Assembly: GCA_001949185.1 (NCBI GenBank)
Contig: BDGG01000004.1
Span: forward strand, 211,620 to 275,619
Direction: 5' to 3'
DNA: 64,000 nt
DNA from: Ramazzottius varieornatus
Lineage: Eukaryota > Animalia > Tardigrada
Shown piece by piece: positions 34,525 to 62,357 of this stretch. Made by a program: the position numbers and the translations under genes. The notes under the pieces are model-generated. The model saw only the letters and a program-made list of their open reading frames with translations. It was not told the origin of the DNA and did not search any database. Within the stretch, counting starts at the first letter, position 1; each line of letters begins with the position of its first letter.

Positions 34525-37500
34525 CTTTTGCGGCATCGAAGTATTTCCTAAGATATCTCAATTAAAAACCAGATTTCAAAAGCATAATGCCGGCCTGGTA
34601 GGACCAGACCGCACACACAAAAAACAAACAAACAATATCTATGACACAGACAAAAGGCGGTTCTTCTTCGCATCTAAAATATTGTAAATCTCTTCCAAAG
34701 CTCGACTTTGAGCAAAAGTACCAAAAACACAAGCAGCATTTCCTCTTTGAATCCCAATGCTAATTTTTTGCTTCAAGACGAAAGAGATCTTGGTTCACCT
34801 GTCCTGTCCATGATCTTCTTACCAATCTTCTGGATGAGGTCCCTCGCTTCGTTCCCGAAAACACCGAAAGTCTCAAACCCCACCGCGCAGAACAGGTACC
34901 GTCCTTCCAGCTCCACGTACTTGGATCGTTTCTTTTCCTCAGCTTGGTTGGCAGCAAACCCAACCCTTTCGGTGGATCCCTGGAGATAGGTCTGTCCCAG
35001 AGTATCCACCACTGTAACGTCCCAGGCCAACGCCTTTCCCTGACACCAAGGCACGAGCGTCAGGCCATCCGGTCGCCTCCCGTCATCTCGTAGCAGTCCA
35101 TTCGGCTCTCTGATGTTATGCACCTGACAACTTGTCAGTGCACGATGGATGATGTCATTCAGAGCGTCGTGTCTGCTATGCCGTCCAGCACTGTTCTTAC
35201 AGGCGAGTCCGTGGCGTCCCAAGCCATCGACCTGCACTCCACATCGACAGGCATGCGGCTCGCACAGCTTGGCTCCAAGGCGTAGACCTACAGAAATTCT
35301 AAAACAATTGTCATCAAGAAGATTACCAAGGACTGAGACTGGCAAAGCGTCCAGCCAGGCTCCAGATTCTTTTGAGGAAACGGCATGGAGGCGGGCCTTC
35401 TCAGTAGGCGTGGATTGCTCTAGCGGGACTCGGAACTGACGTTCGACGATGGGTGTGTCCCACATCTTTCTTAATGATCGCATCAGGCTCGGCGGTGGCT
35501 CGACGTCGCAAATTGCACTCCACAAGGTGATTCCTTCGGCCGTAACTCCATCCAGGTCGGCTTCTGGGACGATCTGGGACACCAGGTGATGTGCCGCATG
35601 AACCGAAGCCAAGTAGGCGGGTAAAGCCAGCTCAGCAGCACACCTCAGTCGCAAACCTCCGTTAGCCACTGGCAGACTTGCTTGACGCCATGTGTCATCA
35701 TTCATGTCGATATTGGCAATCTTTGCTGCGCAAGACCGGATCGCGTCGTCGAAGTGTCTGAGGGACTGTTGGCACTTGTAAGCTGGGCTACAACGTAACA
35801 CGTAAAGCAACTTAGGGATACTCAGACAACTTTTCAACAAGAACAAAGCTTGGTGTGAAGAGATCTTCTCCAGGCGTAAAGTCATAAGCTCTGCAAGGGC
35901 CGTCTTCCCGTCCAGTACCTTGGGAATGGCTTCCGGGAAAAGTGGTGCACCTAAAAGGGTCAGGCTATGGCTCTCAGGAAGGAGGATACCCGGGCACTGA
36001 ACCTTCATCTTGGCAATGGCAGGTGTGCGTTCCCGGACCGTTTCACCGAAGGCGAATACCTCACACTTACTCATGTTGAGTTGCAAACCCAGAGCGGCAC
36101 CGGCACTGATGACTGTCTGTAAGTCAGCCGACACCTGTTCCAAGGTGCCACCGAGTGTTGCATCGTCCAAATACCACAGGTTGAACGGTGACGTGAGCGA
36201 CTTGGACAAGCTACGAGTAGCAAGACAAAACAGCAGCGGACCCAGAGGATCCCCTTGCTGGACACTGCACGCTGATTGCAGGACATGTTCACCATAGAGG
36301 AGGTTGGACGGTTGCCTGTAAAGCTGATACACAAAAGGGAAAAACTCAGAAAGGAGCCTGAGCACTTCCTGTAATAACCTGTCGCGAAACAAAGTATTAG
36401 ACGCATTACGAAAATCAAGCTTGAGGAGGACTTGACAGGTGCTATCGTGTTCCAGGAAGGCTCGAGTTGCATGGACAACTGCTTCGGCACCACCTTTCGT
36501 ACCGTAACCCAGCTGTTGGGGTCGAACCAACACTCCCATGGCTTCCATGACTCGTTTGCTTACTATCTTACCTGCCAGGCGACGTAGGGTTTGCCAACAG
36601 CGATCGGTCTAATGCCACCATCCTTCTTAAGAAGTGCTGTCAGAGAGGCTCCGTAAAGAACTGGGCAAATCTCATCAGGCACTTTTCCTTCCAGCATCAA
36701 CGTCATGAGGCAGGCAAGTTCGATGGAGGCAGGATCTCTTAATCCTCTCAACATGTCTTTGAGGTGCTGAGGTCTCAGTCCATCTGGGCCTCCGGCCGAT
36801 CCATTTGGAAAGCTGGTTACCGCTTGGAGGACTTCCTCGGCAGAGAATTGTCCAACCATGGGCATGAGGGACTGTTTCGGCGGAAACGACGGGTTATGCT
36901 GCTCGGCGGGATGCTTTGAGCGGAGTGCTTCCAACGTTTCCAAGGTGGGCGGGGTCATGACGTCATCCGAAGAAAGTATCCGGACGGCTCCACTGACGTC
37001 ACAATCCTTCAGCTTCTGCTCAACCCTTCTGTTCAGCAAAGAGTCCCCATCCATCTTCTTGTTACGCACCTTCTTGCTGTGTCCGGTCACTGTCACTTCG
37101 TTCATGGCAGGGCGGGACACATTCTCCTTCACGATCGACGTCAGGGATTTCTTCATTTGACTGTCTTTCTCAGGTTGCCGGAAGGCAATGGAGGGGAAGC
37201 GGAGAAGACTGGTCCAGCTATCGGCCGTGTTTGACCGGATACAGTCTCTAATCTTGCTGGCAAAAGCAGCTGCGGCCGTTGCTCTAGCTCCATGAGGGAT
37301 TCTGTGTAGGGTAGGGGGAGGACGCTTACCTAAAGCAGGGGGTTCTGGAAAAGAAACATTTACACGGGGTCTTAAGCTCTGCTCAAGAACAACTGTTCGA
37401 TCTGCCTGTGGCTTCTGCCTCTTCAAACATGGCCTCTTCCCCCGATGACTCTTCAGGTAGCCTTCACTCGCTGCTTTAAAACCACAAAGATCACAGACAA

Positions 37501-45283: not shown

Positions 45284-46530
45284 ATGGAGAACTTCACCTG
45301 GAAAGTGCTGGCTGTAAACTGCTCCAACTCGACCATCTTTGCTTTAGCGAATTTTAGCAGCTCGCTCTCTGGCACTACGATAGTTTGGACGACGGCATAC
45401 ATTATCAACTTCGTAATCAAGCTTTCGGCGCTGCTGATTAACGCAACCTTACTCATCCTGTTCCTGAAGTGCAAATCAACTCGCACTCCGTTCAATGTGT
45501 ACCTTTTCAACCTCAGTTTCGCCAATACAGCGCACGTGTTCTTTTACTATTCCTTGACCTTAATCAACGACTTCGTGCATTTCCGAGGCCCTCCGCCACA
45601 TGCGCTCTGTATCGCATTTCGTTCCAGCAACCAGCTCTTCAGCGTAGGCATCACGAACTCACACTTCCTCTCATCGCTCTCAACCGTTTCTGGGCAGTTG
45701 TCAGTCCTATTTCGTACCGTCATTACCACCAAGGATCCACGCTCCGACGACCGCTTTTACTATGCTTAGCTATGTGGGTTTATGTACTCATTCTGATCTG
45801 CCCTACCTTCGCACTGGATATGACCCTGCCACGGTCTTCATCCGAAACCTCACACTGCTCTTTGTATCCCCGCGGGACGCGGTCGTGGCTGCTTCCAGCT
45901 ATCATCACAGGCTACGATATCCCTATCGGTCTGATTCTCCTAGTGTACCCATTCATCTGCTACAAAACCGTTGCCGCTGCTCGAGTGCGGCAGGTTAATG
46001 TGCCACGTCCGAGTGGACAAGGTGCAGAATTGCAGTAGGAGTACTAAGCAGAAATTTGCATGCATCCCGTTTGATAAGCTACTGTGTGAACTAAGTTATA
46101 CGTCATAGGCTACACGCTAACAGATTTTGTGGTGACTCGCAACTAAGGTTGGTACTATGGTTTTGACATTTTAGGTGCAAGTGGACGCCGGCGAAGCAGT
46201 AGACGCATCACAGAAAACGCTGAAGCTCCAGCCGCGACAAAAAGCTCTTCGGCCGAGCATTCGGTCGCCCCGGTTGCCCTTTGTGGAAGAGCTTTTCAGT
46301 TCCGTTTTCGTCGAAAGGAAAGTCAGTTCTTGACGTTGTCACTTCTTACTGTCAACGTGGGAGTCCTGCTGTATCCGTCGCCATTTTGGTTCACGTTAGC
46401 TATCGCCGGATTGAAACCGCCACCCGTCTTTCATATCGTGACACTTCTTCATTCTGTTGCGGCAGTTGTCGATCCATTACTTTTTTTAATTTCCGTGGAT
46501 TGGTTGCGAACAGCTCTGCGCATCTGTTGA
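45284..46530 (+). pseudogene. Orphan class A GPCR, paralog of 41827-42822. One frameshift at ~45668; intron 46022-46174
   Basis: Motifs: LINATLLILF, TPFNVYLFNLSFAN, LIALNRFWAVVSPISY, YDIPIGLILLVYPFI, AAVVDPLLFL. An extra TC in CTCTCATC breaks the frame. Confidence 0.75.
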
Positions 46531-47242: not shown

Positions 47243-48499
47243 GACATGGCGTAAGGGAATGTCGCTGTACTGAATAACACAAACTTGTCTGAAGAAGAAT
47301 CTATAGCTAAATCAATGAGAGGGATGAGGGTTCTACGGTATGCATGTTTGTGTGAATGCACATGCCAAGACAGATTGATTGACTACCTTCGCAACCAAAT
47401 TGCGAAGGTCATTGTGTGTTAGGACTTTAATTTCTCCGTGTTAAATTCCGCGGCGTACAGCGACTCGCTGAAGATTAATGTAACGTCCCTCCGGGTTTTC
47501 CTCAAGCGAAGTGTCCTAAACCGAAGCCTCTTTTCAAGGTGTCCACGTACATACATTCTAGCTTGGTGTGGAACCGTGAACCAGTTTGAGCCTGGAACCA
47601 TGATGATAAATGTTTTGCACCATCACGAGAACACCGAGCAGCTGGTTAACAGATAACGGATTTGGCCCTGTCAGAAAGCAGTGTTGTCGGCATTTGTCAA
47701 TAAATTATGCATGCCGTTAGTTGTTTCAAGATCTGCACTGCTTGGATATGCGCTACTTGGATGAGCAGCACACCGCGTGATGCTCGAATGCATAACTTGG
47801 TTCCACGAGGAGACAACCAGTCAAAAGAACAGCAGTACTTTTCTTCCTTTTAGAGAATTATGGATCAACTTTAGACATTCATCAGTGGTGTGAAGTGTGA
47901 AGAAGGCTCACAATAGCGTCTAGGCGCCACTCGGCTGATTATTAAAGTGGAAAGAGGGCGTGATCTGATTACGAGGGCAGGATAAAGAACTGCTGGATGG
48001 AGAGCTAAGGCTGTACGGCGCTTGAGCCGCTTCTCTGCCGGATATCGCCGGCAGGGCTCTCCTACAAATTGACAGCTGCTTCAGTTTGGAGGCTGGGTCG
48101 CTGGAGAGCGACACAAGTGGTTTGGATCACATCAGTGTCGCTCAATACTGTGGCGTTTATCCGCACAGCTTTAAGTTTAGATTGCGCCGTTGATTCTTCT
48201 ACAGCAATATTTAGACAATATTGGCATTCCATACTTAATCTACGAGGATTGGCAGGCATCGCCGCGAGGTTCCTGCATGACAAGATGTCCACATAACGTT
48301 GATTCGTCTTGTTGTGACAGTCACTGCGTCACGGTCCCCACAGTTCCTTCATCCCTCCTCACTGCAGAGATTTTATATCCGGCTTTCATGTTTCCATTTC
48401 CTCTTTCGGCAATTACACTATCATTTCCCCCTCTTTCTTCCCTACTCATCCATTGTACAGTTGAACTTTTGGTGTATTGTTAAATTATCGTCTGTCAAA

Positions 48500-51400
48500 A
48501 TGAATGTCTCCATCCAAAACCAGTCATGTCCAGCTGCATTAGATCTGTCCAATGAGTCCTTCTGTTCGTTTTTTCCGGACGATTGTGGACCGAACAAGCC
48601 GATTATTAAAATAGAGACCGGTGAATTTATCGCCAAATTAGTTTTGTACCTGATAATTTTCATCTCGTCGTTTTTCGGGAATATTATGGTAATCCTGGTG
48701 GTGGTGCTTTACCGTTCGAAGATGCAAAGCAGCGCATACATTTATCTCTTGAATCTCAGCGTTGCCGGCTTAATTATCGCATTAGGTTGCATGTGGCCTA
48801 CTTTTATGGTCAACGTGGCCTACGAATATCCGCTCGGCGCAGCCATGTGCAAAATCCATCCATTCCTCCAGCGTATGTAGCAATTACAATTACTGCTCAA
48901 CTTGACAGTTTTATTGCACAACATGATCTTTTGTAACAGTCGTAAACGTTTGACATAAGCCAACCCAGCTCGTTCGGTGGGATCTCCTTCATCTGTCTGA
49001 TTGGATTTTTACAGAAATTTCTTCCCGAAGGATTTTTTAATCTGCGCATCTTAAAACCGTAGAACCGTCAACGATAAGCTCATATGTCGAAACAGCTTTC
49101 CCGATCTATCACTATGAATTATCCGAGGAAACTCTTTTGAATTCAGAAAGGACAGATTTCAAGCAAACATAAAATCTGAAATTTCGTTTGGTCTTTGTCT
49201 GAAACATGGGTATCTCCATATAACAATGCGTCCAAAGCATTTTCGCTTGCGAATGGCTTCTTATAACATCAAGTTCTTTGGAATATTGAACCGTACCATA
49301 GGTTCAATTGCCGCACTTTGCCGCGGTAATGAGATCAGAACGAACGGTTGAAAGATTCATGCTAGTGAAACCACACGGGTGTTAAGGGGCAATCTTGGCG
49401 TCGGCAACGCACTCTAGCCGGAGACGCGCATCAGCGACCACGTCTGTTGCATGTCGTCTGACTAAAGCTAGTGTTTGATTAACTGATCGAACACAGCTGC
49501 GCACATCGTATGATATTTGACCGTTGCGCGTGCCGGCTCATGCACCACACAGTCTTCACGTTCTTTTAGGTTGCCGCTTGTAACTTTCTAACCTGTGGTA
49601 GGAACTTGGCTCTGACTTTAGATTCGTGTTTCTTGGCATCTGTTTGATGTAGGCGTAAGTCTCGTCACGGTGAGACTTTAGGGTCCAGAAACTTCAAAAC
49701 GTTCTTCTGAGCAATTTGGTCAGACACTCGTTGGACGCAATGGAGATACCCATATTTTCCAACTATTGATCGATCTATCGGGTCGGTCGATATGACTGCG
49801 TTTTCTCGTGGCGCACGTTCGATAACCATTTTTCACCAGACAAATAAACTTTTTCAGTTTGTGTGATGTTCAAAAGTAACAACAAGCTTTCTATGATTTG
49901 TCACAGCAGCAACCGAAGCGATTCAATAAGAGAAGAAAATAGGGAAAATGATGGAAGCAGCAGCGCTCAGTTCGACTGGGGTGTGTTCGCATATTTTTGC
50001 GACAATACCCGTTACCACTTTCTCAAAACCGAGGCTGTGCCTCGTACATGTTCTATGTTACAAACGGGAACCCAGATCAAAATTCCGACCCATTTCAATG
50101 ATATGATTTTCGAAAGTTGCACTTACGGAAAGCGTAGTCATATGGAGCGACCTCCATACAAAGAACGATTTTCGAACTGAGTAGTCTTTTCCGGAGCGAC
50201 AGTATCGTGGGTTTCGAAGCTACCCATGAAACCAGGCCTGATACCGGGAAAACAGGGGGTGATCACCACTGACGTCTTCCGGATTCGCCATGCTGTGCTG
50301 TAAAGCGATACATTTCGTGTCAACAGAAGGCAGGTTGATACTGTATATACTTTTTCTGCGGCTCCTCGATAGCTACGGCGAACAATGTCAAGAAAAGCAG
50401 AAGCTGCTACTCTTTCCAAATGGTGATTAGCGTCATGATATTAGATTCAATTTGAACTGTCACACTGGAAGAAAAAGAAAACCAGGGAAAACAGCTCCGT
50501 TGAAAGATGCCACTGGAGAGAAAAAGGCATGAGCAGCCAGTGCACGACCCTGTCAAGTTTTTTCAACTGGAGTTTTCTATACAATATAAAGGATGATGGA
50601 GATAAATCGAGATATGTTTGTTCTCTTTGAAAAGCTTTGCGCAAATGAGGCGAGACGGTCTTGAACTGTAGAAGCGTTCTCCAGAGGTTGGTCGCATCGA
50701 CGCAGAGCGCTTCGTGACATGAGAGCTGGTCCCCGGTGATGGGCACTGGTCAATCAAACTCTGGCCAGAATCAGCTTTTCCTAACTTGGTACCTCGGACG
50801 GAAGTCCGAACATCATGAACTCTGTTCAATTCAGGCATGTGCTGTGGTATTTCAAAGTAGTTCGGATTAAGGATGCACTGATAATTTTTCGAAGCCGGTG
50901 ACTCTCCGTATCCCATCACTCTTCCCATCACACACGGTACTACGTGCAGCAGCGTAGACAAGACGGAGTGCGCAAAGTTCCTTCCCGCTTAGCTTCATTA
51001 CGAACTCGATCAATGTCGCAAAATTTAATGATCTTTTGATTGCTCTGTCAAAGGCCAGAAGTTCAGAAACATCTGCGATTTCGCTTCCTCTACGCTCGTT
51101 CCCCGCACCAGACCTAAAAGCGACACATACTTTTTTAATCTGTCGACAGAAAACCCCTCTACGGACGGCAGTCTGGACGTAATTTGATGAAATTATTCTG
51201 TAATACTTAACTATTTTAGATTGTTTGTTTTTGCAGTGACGTCGATGGTAAGCAGTGTCTTGACCTTGGCGACCATTGCGCTGGATCAATTTGTAGCCGT
51301 TGCCTTTCCCATCCATGCGCGCTTCACTCGTCGCTTATGGCCATCATGGGTCATTAGTGGAGTCTGGATCTTGGCAGCAGCGGCCTCCATACCATTCCTC

Positions 51401-58617: not shown

Positions 58618-59200
58618 TCCACCGAGGAAACTCCATTAAATTCATAATAGCTGCTGATCTTTTTAGTTGTAAAATTATAGGGCATTATAACTCGATTATT
58701 TCAAAAAGGAGTGTTAATTATGAGCTTTTGTCGATCGGACGAAACAATTGTTGAAAAGAATCCTTCGGGATTGGGGATTTGAACCGGTATTGCTGTGTTC
58801 TGGGAATCGGTTTTTGCGTTTCAGCATTTCGTACTTTATCGATGCCTACGAAATTCTTTATTTGATGTGTTTGCTAGTCTTCATATAGTTTACCATGATC
58901 TAGCATTTTGATTTTTGTGATTTTGATAGTTCTGCTGGCGTAATTAAACTTGAACCTGATGGACGATAAGGCTTTATTTGAACGGCTCGGAATCTTGAGC
59001 TAGAATCGCAAAACATGGGGAACATTGTTCTCTGAAGTCCGCATGCTTGCGAGCGACCGATCGCAACACAATGGTTTGTCCCAGTTTTCTTTAAATCAGA
59101 TGCGTGCGGGAAGACAGCACTGCCAGATCTTTTCTTAAATTTCGGAATTTTTTATATTCCGCGTTTCGGAAAGTTACTAATACTCCTCGCCTGGGTGAAC

Positions 59201-60974
59201 ATGGAAATCGGCGTCGTTTTTCTTTTCCTCTTTGCTATCTTTCTTCCCAGTATTCCTGGCTTGAAGGTGACGTTCTTCGGTCAGGAGCAGTATCAGGGTA
59301 AGTGCACATATTGCCCGTCTTTCTTCGGGACTTCTGATGGATTTTCGGTCCGCGCCCTAACGTAATACGAACGTATGCTAACTTCTTACTTTACCAGGTT
59401 CCAACAACAGCTTGGATGTCTTTAATAACTGCATGGACAGTAACGGTTTCGGTATCCGCCCAAACTCTCTAAAGTTATCAGATCCCAGCAAGTTAGCGTC
59501 GTCTCTGGGGAATCTATGTGTCAAGTTATGGCAAGGAAGAAGATGCACCGGTGCGTCGTACCTCGCGATCGGAGATAAACCCGCCCTAACCGATCTCTTC
59601 AATGACACCCATTCTGTTAGCAATTGTGCTATGGGCAACGTAAGTCCAAAAGAAAAATATTTGGGGCTTTTCCCAAACAAACATCTCACCTTGTGACGCT
59701 TCGACAACTACGAGACACTACTTTGAACGTGGCTTCGTTCGTTTTCCGTAAATCCAGGCATAAGATAAGGGATTCTAAAGTCCTATATTTCGGCATGTGT
59801 ACTGATCATTTTGGCTCTTTCGTTGTAGGGAACTCACCCACCTGCAATCTGGAGAGAACACTGGTATGAGCACGTGGAAGACCTCGAGCGCGTCTACTTC
59901 GATAAAGACATCGCAGTCTACTACGACTCGGCGGTCGATCGAGGCATCACCTGGCCCTTCAAGTACATCGGCGACATCTGGCGGTACACCAAGCAGACCT
60001 ACGGAAACTTCAGCCCAGACAACCGGCTGTTCGCGGTTCTTCACCACGGTCGGTACCATGGAGCCCACATGTCAACCCACACCAGCGCCACGCACGATTT
60101 TCGGACCCTGATCGATGGCGGGGTACCCGATGATCAAGGCTGGGCGACCGGACCAGCCTGGCGTCGTCACGAGGGACTCGAGGCTGTCGATATCCTGGTG
60201 AACGAGATCGGTGTTATCGTTGAGCACAGCGCCAAGGGCGTCATGGGTTCTCCTGCTCGACCCATATGGAAGAATGTCTGGGCGGAACTGTTTGCGTTCG
60301 ATGTGTTCACAGCCACCGGAAGACAGGAAGATGCTGATCGAATCTACAGCCTCGCTATTGAGAAGAAGGTCTTGCTGCGCGGTCTACCCTTTAAGCTCTT
60401 CGAAAGCTGGTTCTACCCAATCTATAAGAATTACGGTGGAGCAAAGGTGATGAATAAGTTTCTGACGTTATTGTCGGAAAACTTTCCCAAGGAGACGCTC
60501 GGCAACAAGTGGAGTAGATACTCGCGAGATCTGAACTACGGCGAGCTGGTCCACTTCTGGAACGGTGCCACTGGCGTGAATTTGAAAAACCTAGCAGATG
60601 TGGCATTTCCTTTGGCTTACAGAGGACAATTGTTGAATGCACAACTGCTTTTTCCCGCGGCCACTTACAACAGGACCGCCGTGGATTTCGCAACTGCGAC
60701 CACACCAGCGCCCAACACAACCAGAACCAGACCTCCAAGTTTACCAGCTAGCTTATCGGAAAGTCCAAGTGGTACTGCCGTTCAGCTGACTAGTCAGGAA
60801 GAAGGCAGTTTGGCTTGGAAGGGTGGTCTGATTGCGTGGGGCGTGGTCACCACATTGATTTTGATTGCCCTGCTGGCTGGCGTCTTGTTTGTGGTAGTCC
60901 GCAAAAGAAGAATGCTCGGGTCTTCCGGAAACAGAATGCTCCTTCGAGAAGACGATCTATCTGCTAACATGTGA
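59201..60974 (+). CDS. Type-I membrane protein: signal peptide, beta/gamma-crystallin-like module, bacterial-type metallopeptidase-like domain with a degenerate HExxH, Thr/Pro/Ser stalk, TM helix, short tail. Exons 59201-59297, 59398-59639, 59829-60974
   Basis: Three exons splice in frame. The product runs MEIGVVFLFLFAIFLP (signal), VTFFGQEQYQG / CVKLWQGRRCTG, PPAIWREHWYEH...NEIGVIVE...WAELF, and the TM GLIAWGVVTTLILIALLAGVLFVVV followed by RKRR. Confidence 0.85.
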
Positions 60975-61487
60975 TGTTTCTATTCGCGTCGATACCATAA
61001 AAAGTACTTACGCTCTAAACCTCTTTTCGTTTCAGTCTCACACTGTGTGTCCACGAAATCCACGCACCTGTACATATGAGTAACCTGTACTGGCAGTTTT
61101 CAAGGGCTTTTGCGTCAGTGTTACGTGCTCAGGCATCTAAAATCGTTTACTTCCATTTTTATATGCACGACAAGCAAAAAAATTTCTGCGGCAACGCGTA
61201 AATTCGGCTTCGAGTGGCCGCGGTTCTGATACTTTGCTCATCTTACCGTGGCGGTGTCAGACCTTTTAGGTTTGTCAGAAGAAACTATCTGGTTTCTGGC
61301 CGTCCCGCCGTTCTCACCTTCAGCCAATCTACCCCGTTCGAACGCCAGTGTGTTGTTGTCTGGACCGAAGACTGGAATATATTATGGGAAGATGGTGGGT
61401 CACTGTGGGTAAGTTATCGAGAATCGAGCTGTCATGCTCGAACAATGCGCAGGAATTTCAGGTGCGGAGTAGAGAAGTGTGACATTT

Positions 61488-62357
61488 ATGACGTTTTTTT
61501 CCTCTTCAGCTTGTATGCTTATTTCCGTAACATCCCTACTAGCGGCAACAGCCCCACGTGACAACGGTCAACGCGACGAGAAAGGAAATGTTGCGGTCCA
61601 GCAGCCCAACACTTCTGCCACTGCTGGTTCTCCAAACAACGTAAATCACAACGACACCAATCCAGAGAACCTTCCGACACGTAGCAATGTTACGATGACA
61701 CAGGCCAACAGTAAGGTTAACACGTCAAGTGTTTCGATTCCCGTGAAACGCGACGACCACCACCACTTTGCTGTCAAACTGCCGCCATCTAACAGTACGG
61801 AGCACAGAGAAGCTATCTTAGCAGAAACCCTCGCAGCTTTGACGAACCTGAAGCTAGCCCAGCGAAAAAGTGCTAACTCAACCACGCTTCCTGCTGCCCC
61901 TGCTGCCACGACTTCAGCCAACAGTAGTCATCTCGCCTTGCATCAGCAGAATGTCTCGGCTGAACACCACAGCGACCCGACTCCTAGCCTGCCGTCACCA
62001 GACATGAAATTGGTCCACATAAACTCCAGACTGGTGCAGGACCCCAAAGTTGCGCAGATGGTCAGCAGTCATACTTCTTGGGAGTCTCCGCTGTACAGCA
62101 CCAGAGTGGCCTTGGGTTTCTTCGTCGTATTCACCCTTGCGCTGTTGATTGGATCCGTTTTGATGTACCGTCGCATGCACAGGTAAGGTAAGACATTTGA
62201 TCACTGGGCGTGACTGCTACTGTATTATTAAATGGGAACTGCTCATGATGATATCAGTGCTTTCTGGGGTTTTAGAATGAGAGAGGAAGACCGTACAGTG
62301 TTCTCCTCCACAAGTTACGGCGACTTAAGGAACCATAATTACGACTTGGCACTGTAA
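61488..62357 (+). CDS. Mucin-like single-pass membrane protein of unknown function. Exons 61488-62182, 62276-62357
   Basis: Signal-like N-terminus, Ser/Thr/Asn-rich ectodomain with many NxS/T sites, and TM VALGFFVVFTLALLIGSVLM followed by YRR. The second exon is in frame and ends SYGDLRNHNYDLAL*. Confidence 0.7.

Follow-up and report, generated by a model that had tools for sequence, protein, structure and literature searches.

Enzyme folds that have lost their catalytic residues serve as receptors in several animal systems, among them the non-catalytic PGRPs (PGRP-LC), the GNBP/βGRP proteins (inactive GH16 domains) and the non-proteolytic ADAMs (ADAM22). Genes that animals have acquired horizontally are usually kept as enzymes, for example as cell-wall hydrolases or detoxifying enzymes. 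Here we describe RvY_08450, a gene of the tardigrade Ramazzottius varieornatus that occupies positions 59201-60974 (+) of a 64,000-nucleotide stretch of contig BDGG01000004.1 (the window, to which all unprefixed coordinates refer) and that, as read from the sequence, encodes 494 amino acids in three exons. The protein consists, in order, of a signal peptide, one βγ-crystallin domain, a zincin-fold domain of ~280 amino acids (the core), a stalk rich in Ser, Thr and Pro, one transmembrane helix and a 22-residue tail. Like PGRP-LC, GNBP/βGRP and ADAM22, it would display a hydrolase fold stripped of its catalytic residues at the cell surface, and its paralogues add a GH16-like domain; the likeness is one of analogy and not of membership. 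Unlike those receptors, whose fold and ancestry are unrelated to it, the tardigrade domain appears to be bacterial in origin, and its binding of a ligand is presumed only.

On balance, we think it somewhat probable that RvY_08450 derives from a bacterial crystallin-plus-core unit that became anchored in the membrane, lost its zinc site, and now binds rather than cuts. A literature search found no paper describing RvY_08450, the core family or receptor kinases of the kind encoded by its paralogues, and the supplements of two tardigrade genome papers hold no usable entry on RvY_08450.

The core domain, its bacterial family and its degenerate zinc-site motif

Three features define the core and its former active site (pLDDT, predicted local distance difference test):

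59829..60674 (+), residues 114-395: zincin/gluzincin-fold core; intronless, pLDDT >90, 41-48% identical to bacterial homologues
60201..60224 (+), residues 238-245: degenerate active-site motif NEIGVIVE, on model helix 231-250; the bacterial counterpart is HExxH[IV]VE
60285..60287 (+): codon of the retained E266 (in WAELF), on the next helix (263-275); the column is 87% Glu in bacterial-type members

An exhaustive HMMER search with the core returned 276 representative clusters, and nearly all of the matches listed (150 of the 276 clusters) carry HExxH[IV]VE. Members of this bacterial family match the core with E values of 1e-42 to 1e-71 and 36-48% identity, covering residues 3-272 of 274. A scan of species-representative bacterial and archaeal genomes yielded 506 loci, the best 80 of which (41-48% identity) belong to soil Bacteroidota (Chitinophaga, Niastella, Pedobacter, Mucilaginibacter and Dawidia) and Myxococcota (Cystobacter, Vitiosangium and Hyalangium); further named members come from Hymenobacter, Lysobacter, Micromonospora and an Armatimonadota metagenome-assembled genome (MAG). 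The Atlas clusters of the family are 94-100% Bacteria, and within bacteria the family is patchy, being present in four of 301 sampled genomes from the class of Chitinophaga. The preliminary description of this locus had characterised such a family as actinobacterial, Bacteroidetes and fungal; bacterial homologues with HE[VI]xH[IV]VE followed by W-A/x-E were indeed recovered, and no fungal member was seen. Pfam and NCBIfam searches with the RvY_08450 exons and with homologues gave no model for the core, such that the searches bring to light a sizeable bacterial zincin-like family that lacks a model in either database.

The bacterial members are secreted proteins in which the core is fused to βγ-crystallin/Inhibitor_I36 domains, to CBM6/CBM35, F5/8 type C and type IX secretion system (T9SS) sorting tails, and sometimes to BSP; they are labelled at source as 'T9SS type A sorting domain-containing protein', 'peptidase inhibitor family I36 protein', 'carbohydrate-binding protein' or 'hypothetical protein'. 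They share with the tardigrade protein a secreted or extracellular location; the latter differs from them in possessing introns, a stalk, a transmembrane helix and a tail, and in lacking CBM, T9SS and BSP partners. Fusion of the gluzincin-fold domain to domains that match Inhibitor_I36 is seen in P0002, P0011, P0014, P0245 and others. SMPI, a Streptomyces protein that inhibits thermolysin-like peptidases, has the I36 fold, and one possibility is that the I36-type domain of these bacterial proteins is a built-in inhibitor or chaperone. In some of the bacterial homologues, BSP (PF04450) is present as a second zincin. Bacterial-type members without the histidines also exist (P0008, P0041, P0050, P0063, P0064 and others, such as a Polyangia MAG protein that reads REIGRIVE), and dead copies of the core domain are therefore not confined to animals.

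A PDB sequence search with the core produced chance matches only. An AlphaFold model of the protein built from 131 sequences (model 1) has pLDDT >90 over residues 112-395, and both Foldseek (probability 0.9-1.0) and an exhaustive VIA-align search with the core of this model placed gluzincin catalytic domains at the top and returned little else. The best VIA Z scores were obtained with M1 aminopeptidases (3cia, 13.1; 1z1w, 12.8), lugdulysin of family M30 (12.6), the M60-like O-glycopeptidases AM0627 and BT4244 (11.3-11.7) and thermolysin of family M4 (11.3), with 200-250 residues aligned in each case; the structures matched are 3cia, 1z1w, 7bb8, thermolysin, 7yx8 and 5kd8. The core is thus predicted to adopt a thermolysin-like gluzincin catalytic fold, in keeping with the gluzincin-like site suggested in the preliminary description. 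As in these gluzincins, the active-site helix of the predicted core and the next helix, which bears a Glu, are equivalently placed, and by analogy with gluzincin architecture E266 would be the third zinc ligand. Unlike them, the core is only 7-15% identical in sequence, is matched by no Pfam peptidase model and, in the tardigrade protein, has no HExxH. A marginal and distant relation to BSP (PF04450, 'Peptidase of plants and bacteria') was also detected: a profile of the core aligned with BSP domains taken from the fusion proteins (hhalign 83%, E 9e-6) with the HExxH helices and the downstream Glu in register. The Pfam model of BSP misses the core, and the two stand side by side as distinct domains in some bacterial proteins.

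Inspection of the active-site motif in RvY_08450 (N238-E-I-G-V242-I-V-E245) reveals that both HExxH histidines are replaced, one by Asn and the other by Val. In the 220 bacterial-type cores with an HExxH motif, conservation is 100% (220/220) at each of H, E and H, 97% at the Glu in position +3 and 87% at the Glu of W-x-E. The replacement is shared by P0009, an open reading frame (ORF) fragment from an ENA assembly that is 87% identical to RvY_08450 and likewise reads NEIGVIVE. Because N238 and V242 stand in place of the zinc-ligand histidines, the canonical metal site cannot form. Elsewhere the domain is well preserved: E239, E245, E266 and D271 are retained, as are 43 of the 60 family-conserved positions. 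RvY_08450 therefore reads as a homologue of the bacterial HExxH[IV]VE family that has probably become a pseudo-enzyme.

One could argue instead that RvY_08450 is still an enzyme, working through a non-canonical site (Asn238, Glu239, Glu245 and Glu266) that uses a different metal or dispenses with metal altogether. Retention of the four acidic residues listed above would suit such a site, as would the existence of bacterial-type members that also lack the histidines. Against this, the three signature positions are invariant wherever the bacterial-type motif is present, Val242 is unable to ligate a metal and, to our knowledge, loss of one zinc ligand abolishes activity in characterised gluzincins. 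Moreover, erosion of the zinc site has gone further than in RvY_08450 in the six other core loci of the tardigrade and in many springtail-type copies (Logan/ENA ORFs given this label solely because they cluster with two Orchesella dallaii proteins, from a springtail). We regard retained catalysis as very improbable.

Gene model, crystallin module and membrane anchor

The remaining features of the gene and its product are as follows (UTR, untranslated region; CDS, coding sequence):

59093..59200 (+): 5' UTR; transcript contigs begin at 59041-59093, with a likely start near 59093
59201..59297 (+): exon 1 CDS; ATG at 59201, donor GTAAGT at 59298; signal peptide and first crystallin β-strand (residues 22-32 and the first base of the G33 codon)
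residues 1 to ~20 (+): signal peptide, a hydrophobic N-terminus
59298..59397 (+): intron 1; 100 nt, GT..AG, phase 1, acceptor AG at 59396-7; lies inside the first Greek-key motif
59398..59639 (+): exon 2 CDS; remainder of the βγ-crystallin domain, residues 33-113, with four Cys (C45, C73, C82 and C109)
59640..59828 (+): intron 2; 189 nt, GT..AG, phase 0, donor GTAAGT at 59640, acceptor AG at 59827-8; lies exactly at the crystallin/core boundary
59829..60974 (+): exon 3; core, stalk, transmembrane helix and tail without an intron; TGA at 60972-4
60675..60833 (+), residues 396-448: S/T/P-rich stalk; two N-glycosylation sequons (NRT, NTT), pLDDT <50
60834..60905 (+), residues 449-472: transmembrane helix; a hydrophobic run followed by RKRR, predicted helix 449-475
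60906..60974 (+): cytoplasmic tail and stop; 22 amino acids, no kinase domain
60975..61217 (+): 3' UTR; contigs end at 61096, 61177, 61190 and 61217 in four runs

Full-length analyses used the public protein P0001 ('hypothetical protein') and exon-wise searches the window sequence. The search alignment of P0001 with the translation of exon 3 is 100% identical over the whole exon, and comparison by eye shows that its N-terminal residues are those encoded by exons 1 and 2. In four runs, each from a different study, contigs omit exactly 100 nt and 189 nt at the GT..AG sites; these runs stand on record as 'RNA?', and we take the contigs to be transcripts because every one of them lacks both introns. 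They extend from ~59041/59093 to 61096-61217 with no further joint after exon 3. The joint between exons 1 and 2 (59296/7 to 59397/8) is seen in four runs, and the region it completes includes a strand (E22-28) in structure model 2, described below. In run X11 an oligonucleotide of the template-switch type directly precedes 59093, which suggests that this is the 5' end. The preliminary description had proposed that two upstream exons splice in frame to the core and that the core, stalk and transmembrane segment share one intronless exon; the contigs and the exon 3 translation agree with it on both counts, and the sequence motifs that it quoted are all present in the protein.

The N-terminal module contains two Greek-key motifs of the type [YFW]xxxx[YF]xG with a conserved Ser, the first FGQEQYQG...NSL and the second WQGRRCTG...HSVS, in which a Cys replaces the aromatic residue. 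A Pfam search with the exon 2 translation gave no match at E up to 1, including to Crystall (PF00030) and Inhibitor_I36, models that do match the corresponding domains of the bacterial relatives. A hidden Markov model (HMM) trained solely on crystallin domains from bacterial members of the family recognises both Greek keys of the tardigrade module (21 bits), and a five-sequence profile run against the whole PDB matches only spherulin 3a and γ-crystallin C, weakly (E 0.18-1.3). Model 1, for which this region was more poorly aligned, left the module unfolded. In a second AlphaFold model, built from a collinear alignment of 35 sequences (model 2), residues 21-40 and 62-115 reach a pLDDT of ~81-84, and Foldseek with this model retrieves Protein S (1nps; template-modelling score 0.69, root-mean-square deviation 2.9 Å), clostrillin (0.64-0.67), a Ciona βγ-crystallin (0.66), and also AIM1 and lens crystallins (overall range 0.57-0.69). 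Residues 22-113 are thus predicted to form a single βγ-crystallin domain, and the HMM, the PDB profile and the structural matches concur with the Greek-key-like character noted for this module in the preliminary description.

The module shares two Greek keys and a predicted βγ-crystallin fold with Protein S, clostrillin, spherulin 3a and the I36 inhibitor SMPI, and homology links it to the Crystall/I36-type domains that members of the bacterial family carry as fusion partners. It differs from microbial βγ-crystallins in its four conserved Cys, its degenerate first calcium-site motif and a loop of ~10-20 residues that interrupts the first Greek key. On the other side of the core, 40% of the positions in a 55-residue segment overlapping the stalk (residues 394-448) are Ser, Thr or Pro. 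RvY_08450 is a genuine tardigrade gene, is expressed, and encodes a membrane glycoprotein of type I.

The gene sits on a 4.74-Mb contig amid animal genes, and its neighbourhood is an ordinary animal genome context. Upstream lie a retroelement ORF with an RVT_1 reverse transcriptase (34773-36548, -) and two ORFs that are exons of rhodopsin-type G-protein-coupled receptors (45469-46038, +, and 48299-48880, +). Downstream, at 61274-62186 (+), a separate transcript starts near 61274, with an intron from 61409; its product is rich in Ser, Thr and Asn, has a C-terminal transmembrane helix and a very short tail, matches no Pfam model, and resembles in its topology the stalk, transmembrane helix and tail of RvY_08450.

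Probable bacterial origin and the number of transfers

In several bacterial family members, a βγ-crystallin domain immediately precedes the core. BLASTP of P0001 against P0245 of Hymenobacter weizhouensis aligns the two proteins collinearly over residues 13-373 (39% identity, 364 aa), and P0190, a bacterial-type metagenome ORF whose core groups with a Chitinophaga protein (support 100/95), combines an HExxH core with a crystallin module that has the same four Cys positions. The four-Cys module of P0190 was not recovered from three bacterial genomes that were queried for it, nor from the 301 genomes sampled in the class of Chitinophaga; the matches there all begin at the core. Since bacterial members already pair crystallin and core, the RvY_08450 ectodomain most likely entered as one piece. 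The preliminary description had presented the protein as a chimera of a crystallin-like module and a bacterial-looking pseudo-peptidase; a eukaryotic origin of this fusion was rejected on account of the bacterial pairing and the collinear Hymenobacter protein. The animal additions to RvY_08450 are its introns, stalk, transmembrane helix and tail, and to this extent the gain of introns and of a membrane anchor proposed earlier is upheld.

The similarity scores point in the same direction. The best bacterial-type E values (3.5e-71 and 9.2e-68) surpass the best animal-type values from outside tardigrades (1.3e-32 and 3.4e-24) by ~89-108 natural-log units, and this gap, together with the 276 clusters and 506 loci described above, argues for the bacterial origin of the core that had been suspected from its sequence, with direction and number of transfers being matters of interpretation. 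Named animal homologues, within a limited animal sampling, come only from R. varieornatus and Orchesella dallaii.

An alternative is vertical inheritance of an ancient animal family that was lost almost everywhere else. It draws some support from an approximately unbiased (AU) test, which does not reject a single clade of all 15 animal-type rows (p 0.57, log-likelihood 6.1 above the free tree) or of 21 tardigrade and springtail-type rows (p 0.40), both groups being panarthropods. Yet the named relatives from one tardigrade and one springtail species stand against 506 bacterial loci, and the bacterial domain architecture is kept collinearly. Contamination or an assembly artefact was also considered and rejected: RvY_08450 meets the expectations of a host gene in its position on a 4.74-Mb contig with animal neighbours and in its two GT..AG spliceosomal introns, removed in transcripts from four studies, and it has six further paralogous loci on four contigs. 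Neither ancient descent nor artefact strikes us as credible beyond a slim chance.

How often the gene was transferred is harder to read from the trees, whose backbone is weakly supported. The rows nearest to RvY_08450 by path are of Bacteroidota/Myxococcota type, and no well-supported branch holds it. FastTree and quick trees set it inside a bacterial polytomy apart from the paralogue clade; mixture-model maximum-likelihood (ML) trees of 73-row subsets make it weakly adjoin the paralogues or other long branches. Constraining the six tardigrade rows to one clade is likewise not rejected (AU p 0.65), with a log-likelihood 9.8 above the free tree; long-branch attraction may contribute to the AU results. 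The trees are compatible with one transfer and with more than one, and with either a shared event or separate events in tardigrades and springtails.

A single acquisition in the tardigrade lineage is the scenario that we favour, RvY_08450 being the copy that has diverged least. Under a competing account, the kinase-linked paralogues go back to an older transfer and RvY_08450 to a bacterial crystallin-plus-core gene that was acquired later and independently, its transmembrane helix and tail having been added independently or by exon shuffling. The identities of RvY_08450 (41-48% to bacterial cores, 27-35% to its paralogues) and its separation from the latter in FastTree and quick trees speak for two events, as does the retention, by RvY_08450 alone, of the bacterial crystallin at the N-terminus and of most of the motif (xEIGxIVE). 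This account has to contend with the more careful ML trees, which put RvY_08450 beside the paralogues with weak support, with the likelihood gained under the one-clade constraint, and with an alignment, itself weak evidence, of the RvY_08450 tail to the juxtamembrane/kinase-start stretch of the paralogues (MAFFT). Two acquisitions are accordingly a possibility that we hold to be the lesser one.

Kinase-linked paralogues and a possible receptor function

The R. varieornatus genome contains six further core loci on four contigs, which are 27-35% identical to the RvY_08450 core; all six lack the histidines, and none keeps HExxH. Five of these (L002-L006) have the following coordinates, each marking a His-less core:

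L002, C7:1840804-1841598 (-)
L003, C7:1846001-1846792 (+)
L004, C4:747979-748755 (+)
L005, C19:258883-259671 (+)
L006, C19:264094-264816 (-)

In these five paralogues, a single long ORF specifies, from the N-terminus onwards, a GH16-like domain (24.8 bits in L005, which exceeds the Pfam cut-off), the dead core, a transmembrane helix and a juxtamembrane stretch, and a downstream ORF on the same strand encodes a PK_Tyr_Ser-Thr domain (E 1.8e-32 in L005 and 1.7e-21 in L003). Given the predicted joining of ectodomain and kinase exons, the five look like receptor tyrosine kinases. Two public models, P0107 and P0136, stop before the kinase exon, and the annotation may split these paralogue genes. 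The sixth locus, L007 (C10:62472-62864, +), is a partial copy that is near-identical to the C-terminal half of the L005 ectodomain and diverges after the transmembrane helix; a recent, fragmentary duplication is its probable origin.

The sequence between RvY_08450 and the window end was inspected for kinase motifs and yielded none. In a MAFFT alignment, part of its tail (60930-60971, +; ..MLLREDDL..) falls on the juxtamembrane ..[FY][LIV][LIV]P[RS]xxL.. of L002-L006, the usual start of a tyrosine-kinase domain. This part of the tail might be the remnant of a former kinase domain; the stretch of similarity is very short.

Outside tardigrades, the only named animal relatives, in a limited sampling for which animal genomes were not searched directly, are two proteins of Orchesella dallaii, one with CBM14 and a core and the other with a signal peptide, a four-Cys crystallin and a His-less core. 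Five Logan/ENA ORFs that fall in one clade with these proteins (P0090, P0183, P0185, P0188 and P0189) combine a four-Cys βγ-crystallin module with an intact HExxH core, and catalytically competent copies of the core may thus occur in animals.

The history that we favour for RvY_08450 would begin with a crystallin-zincin pair that descends as one collinear unit from a secreted soil-bacterial protein of the Bacteroidota/Myxococcota type. Within the animal lineage, the gene would then have gained two spliceosomal introns, an S/T/P-rich stalk, a transmembrane helix and a short tail, and its two zinc-ligand histidines would have become Asn and Val while the remaining fold was kept. The dead domain would hold, without cleaving it, the ligand class on which the bacterial enzymes act, and RvY_08450 would serve at the cell surface to display or detect that ligand, possibly partnering its receptor-kinase paralogues, or acting as their decoy, while having no kinase itself. 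Three observations weigh against this history. The protein keeps the general-base Glu together with two other acidic residues, which is compatible with a non-canonical metal site; RvY_08450 forms a long branch (about 1.2-1.4), so that its grouping with the paralogues could reflect long-branch attraction; and its identity of up to 48% to bacterial proteins, compared with 27-35% to its own paralogues, also fits a separate, later transfer.

RvY_08450 may be read as a non-catalytic binding receptor for microbes or glycans, a role already suggested in the preliminary description. Its ligand is probably a glycan-decorated or cell-wall-associated polypeptide, a guess as to class that we base on the fusion of the bacterial enzymes to carbohydrate-binding modules and on the presence of O-glycopeptidases among the closest solved folds. 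The stalk-borne position of the domain suits ligand capture or sensing, and the recruitment of the same dead domain beside a GH16-like domain, a transmembrane helix and a kinase exon in the paralogues suggests a role that depends on a ligand.

A plainer interpretation would be that RvY_08450 is a structural or protective surface glycoprotein without a specific ligand, its dead domain being a spacer or adhesive bulk on a mucin-like stalk, for example in organising the cuticle or glycocalyx, or being shed. The stalk, the transmembrane helix and the very short tail devoid of a signalling domain would all fit such a protein, and the downstream neighbour gene also encodes an S/T/N-rich protein with a single transmembrane helix. 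Preservation of 43 of the 60 family-conserved positions, including acidic residues of the active-site helix, is less readily explained in this way, as are the retention of the motif in the 87%-identical P0009 and the placement of the domain next to kinase exons, and we judge a purely structural role rather unlikely.

More tentatively, the inactivated bacterial zincin may have founded a new class of tardigrade pattern-recognition receptors, in which the five GH16-like/dead-zincin receptor tyrosine kinases would sense the microbial cell wall and RvY_08450, with the original bacterial architecture, would act as a kinase-less co-receptor or decoy; the springtail members would reflect a domestication of this family that was either independent or shared by descent. 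We offer this wider scheme as a conjecture with the odds against it. R. varieornatus can be edited by DIPA-CRISPR (PMC11175437), and the receptor hypothesis is therefore directly testable.

RvY_08450 thus appears to represent a bacterial enzyme module that was kept after loss of its catalytic metal site, anchored in the membrane and, in its paralogues, wired to tyrosine-kinase exons. If this is true, it would be a clear case in which horizontal transfer supplied an animal with a new receptor ectodomain.

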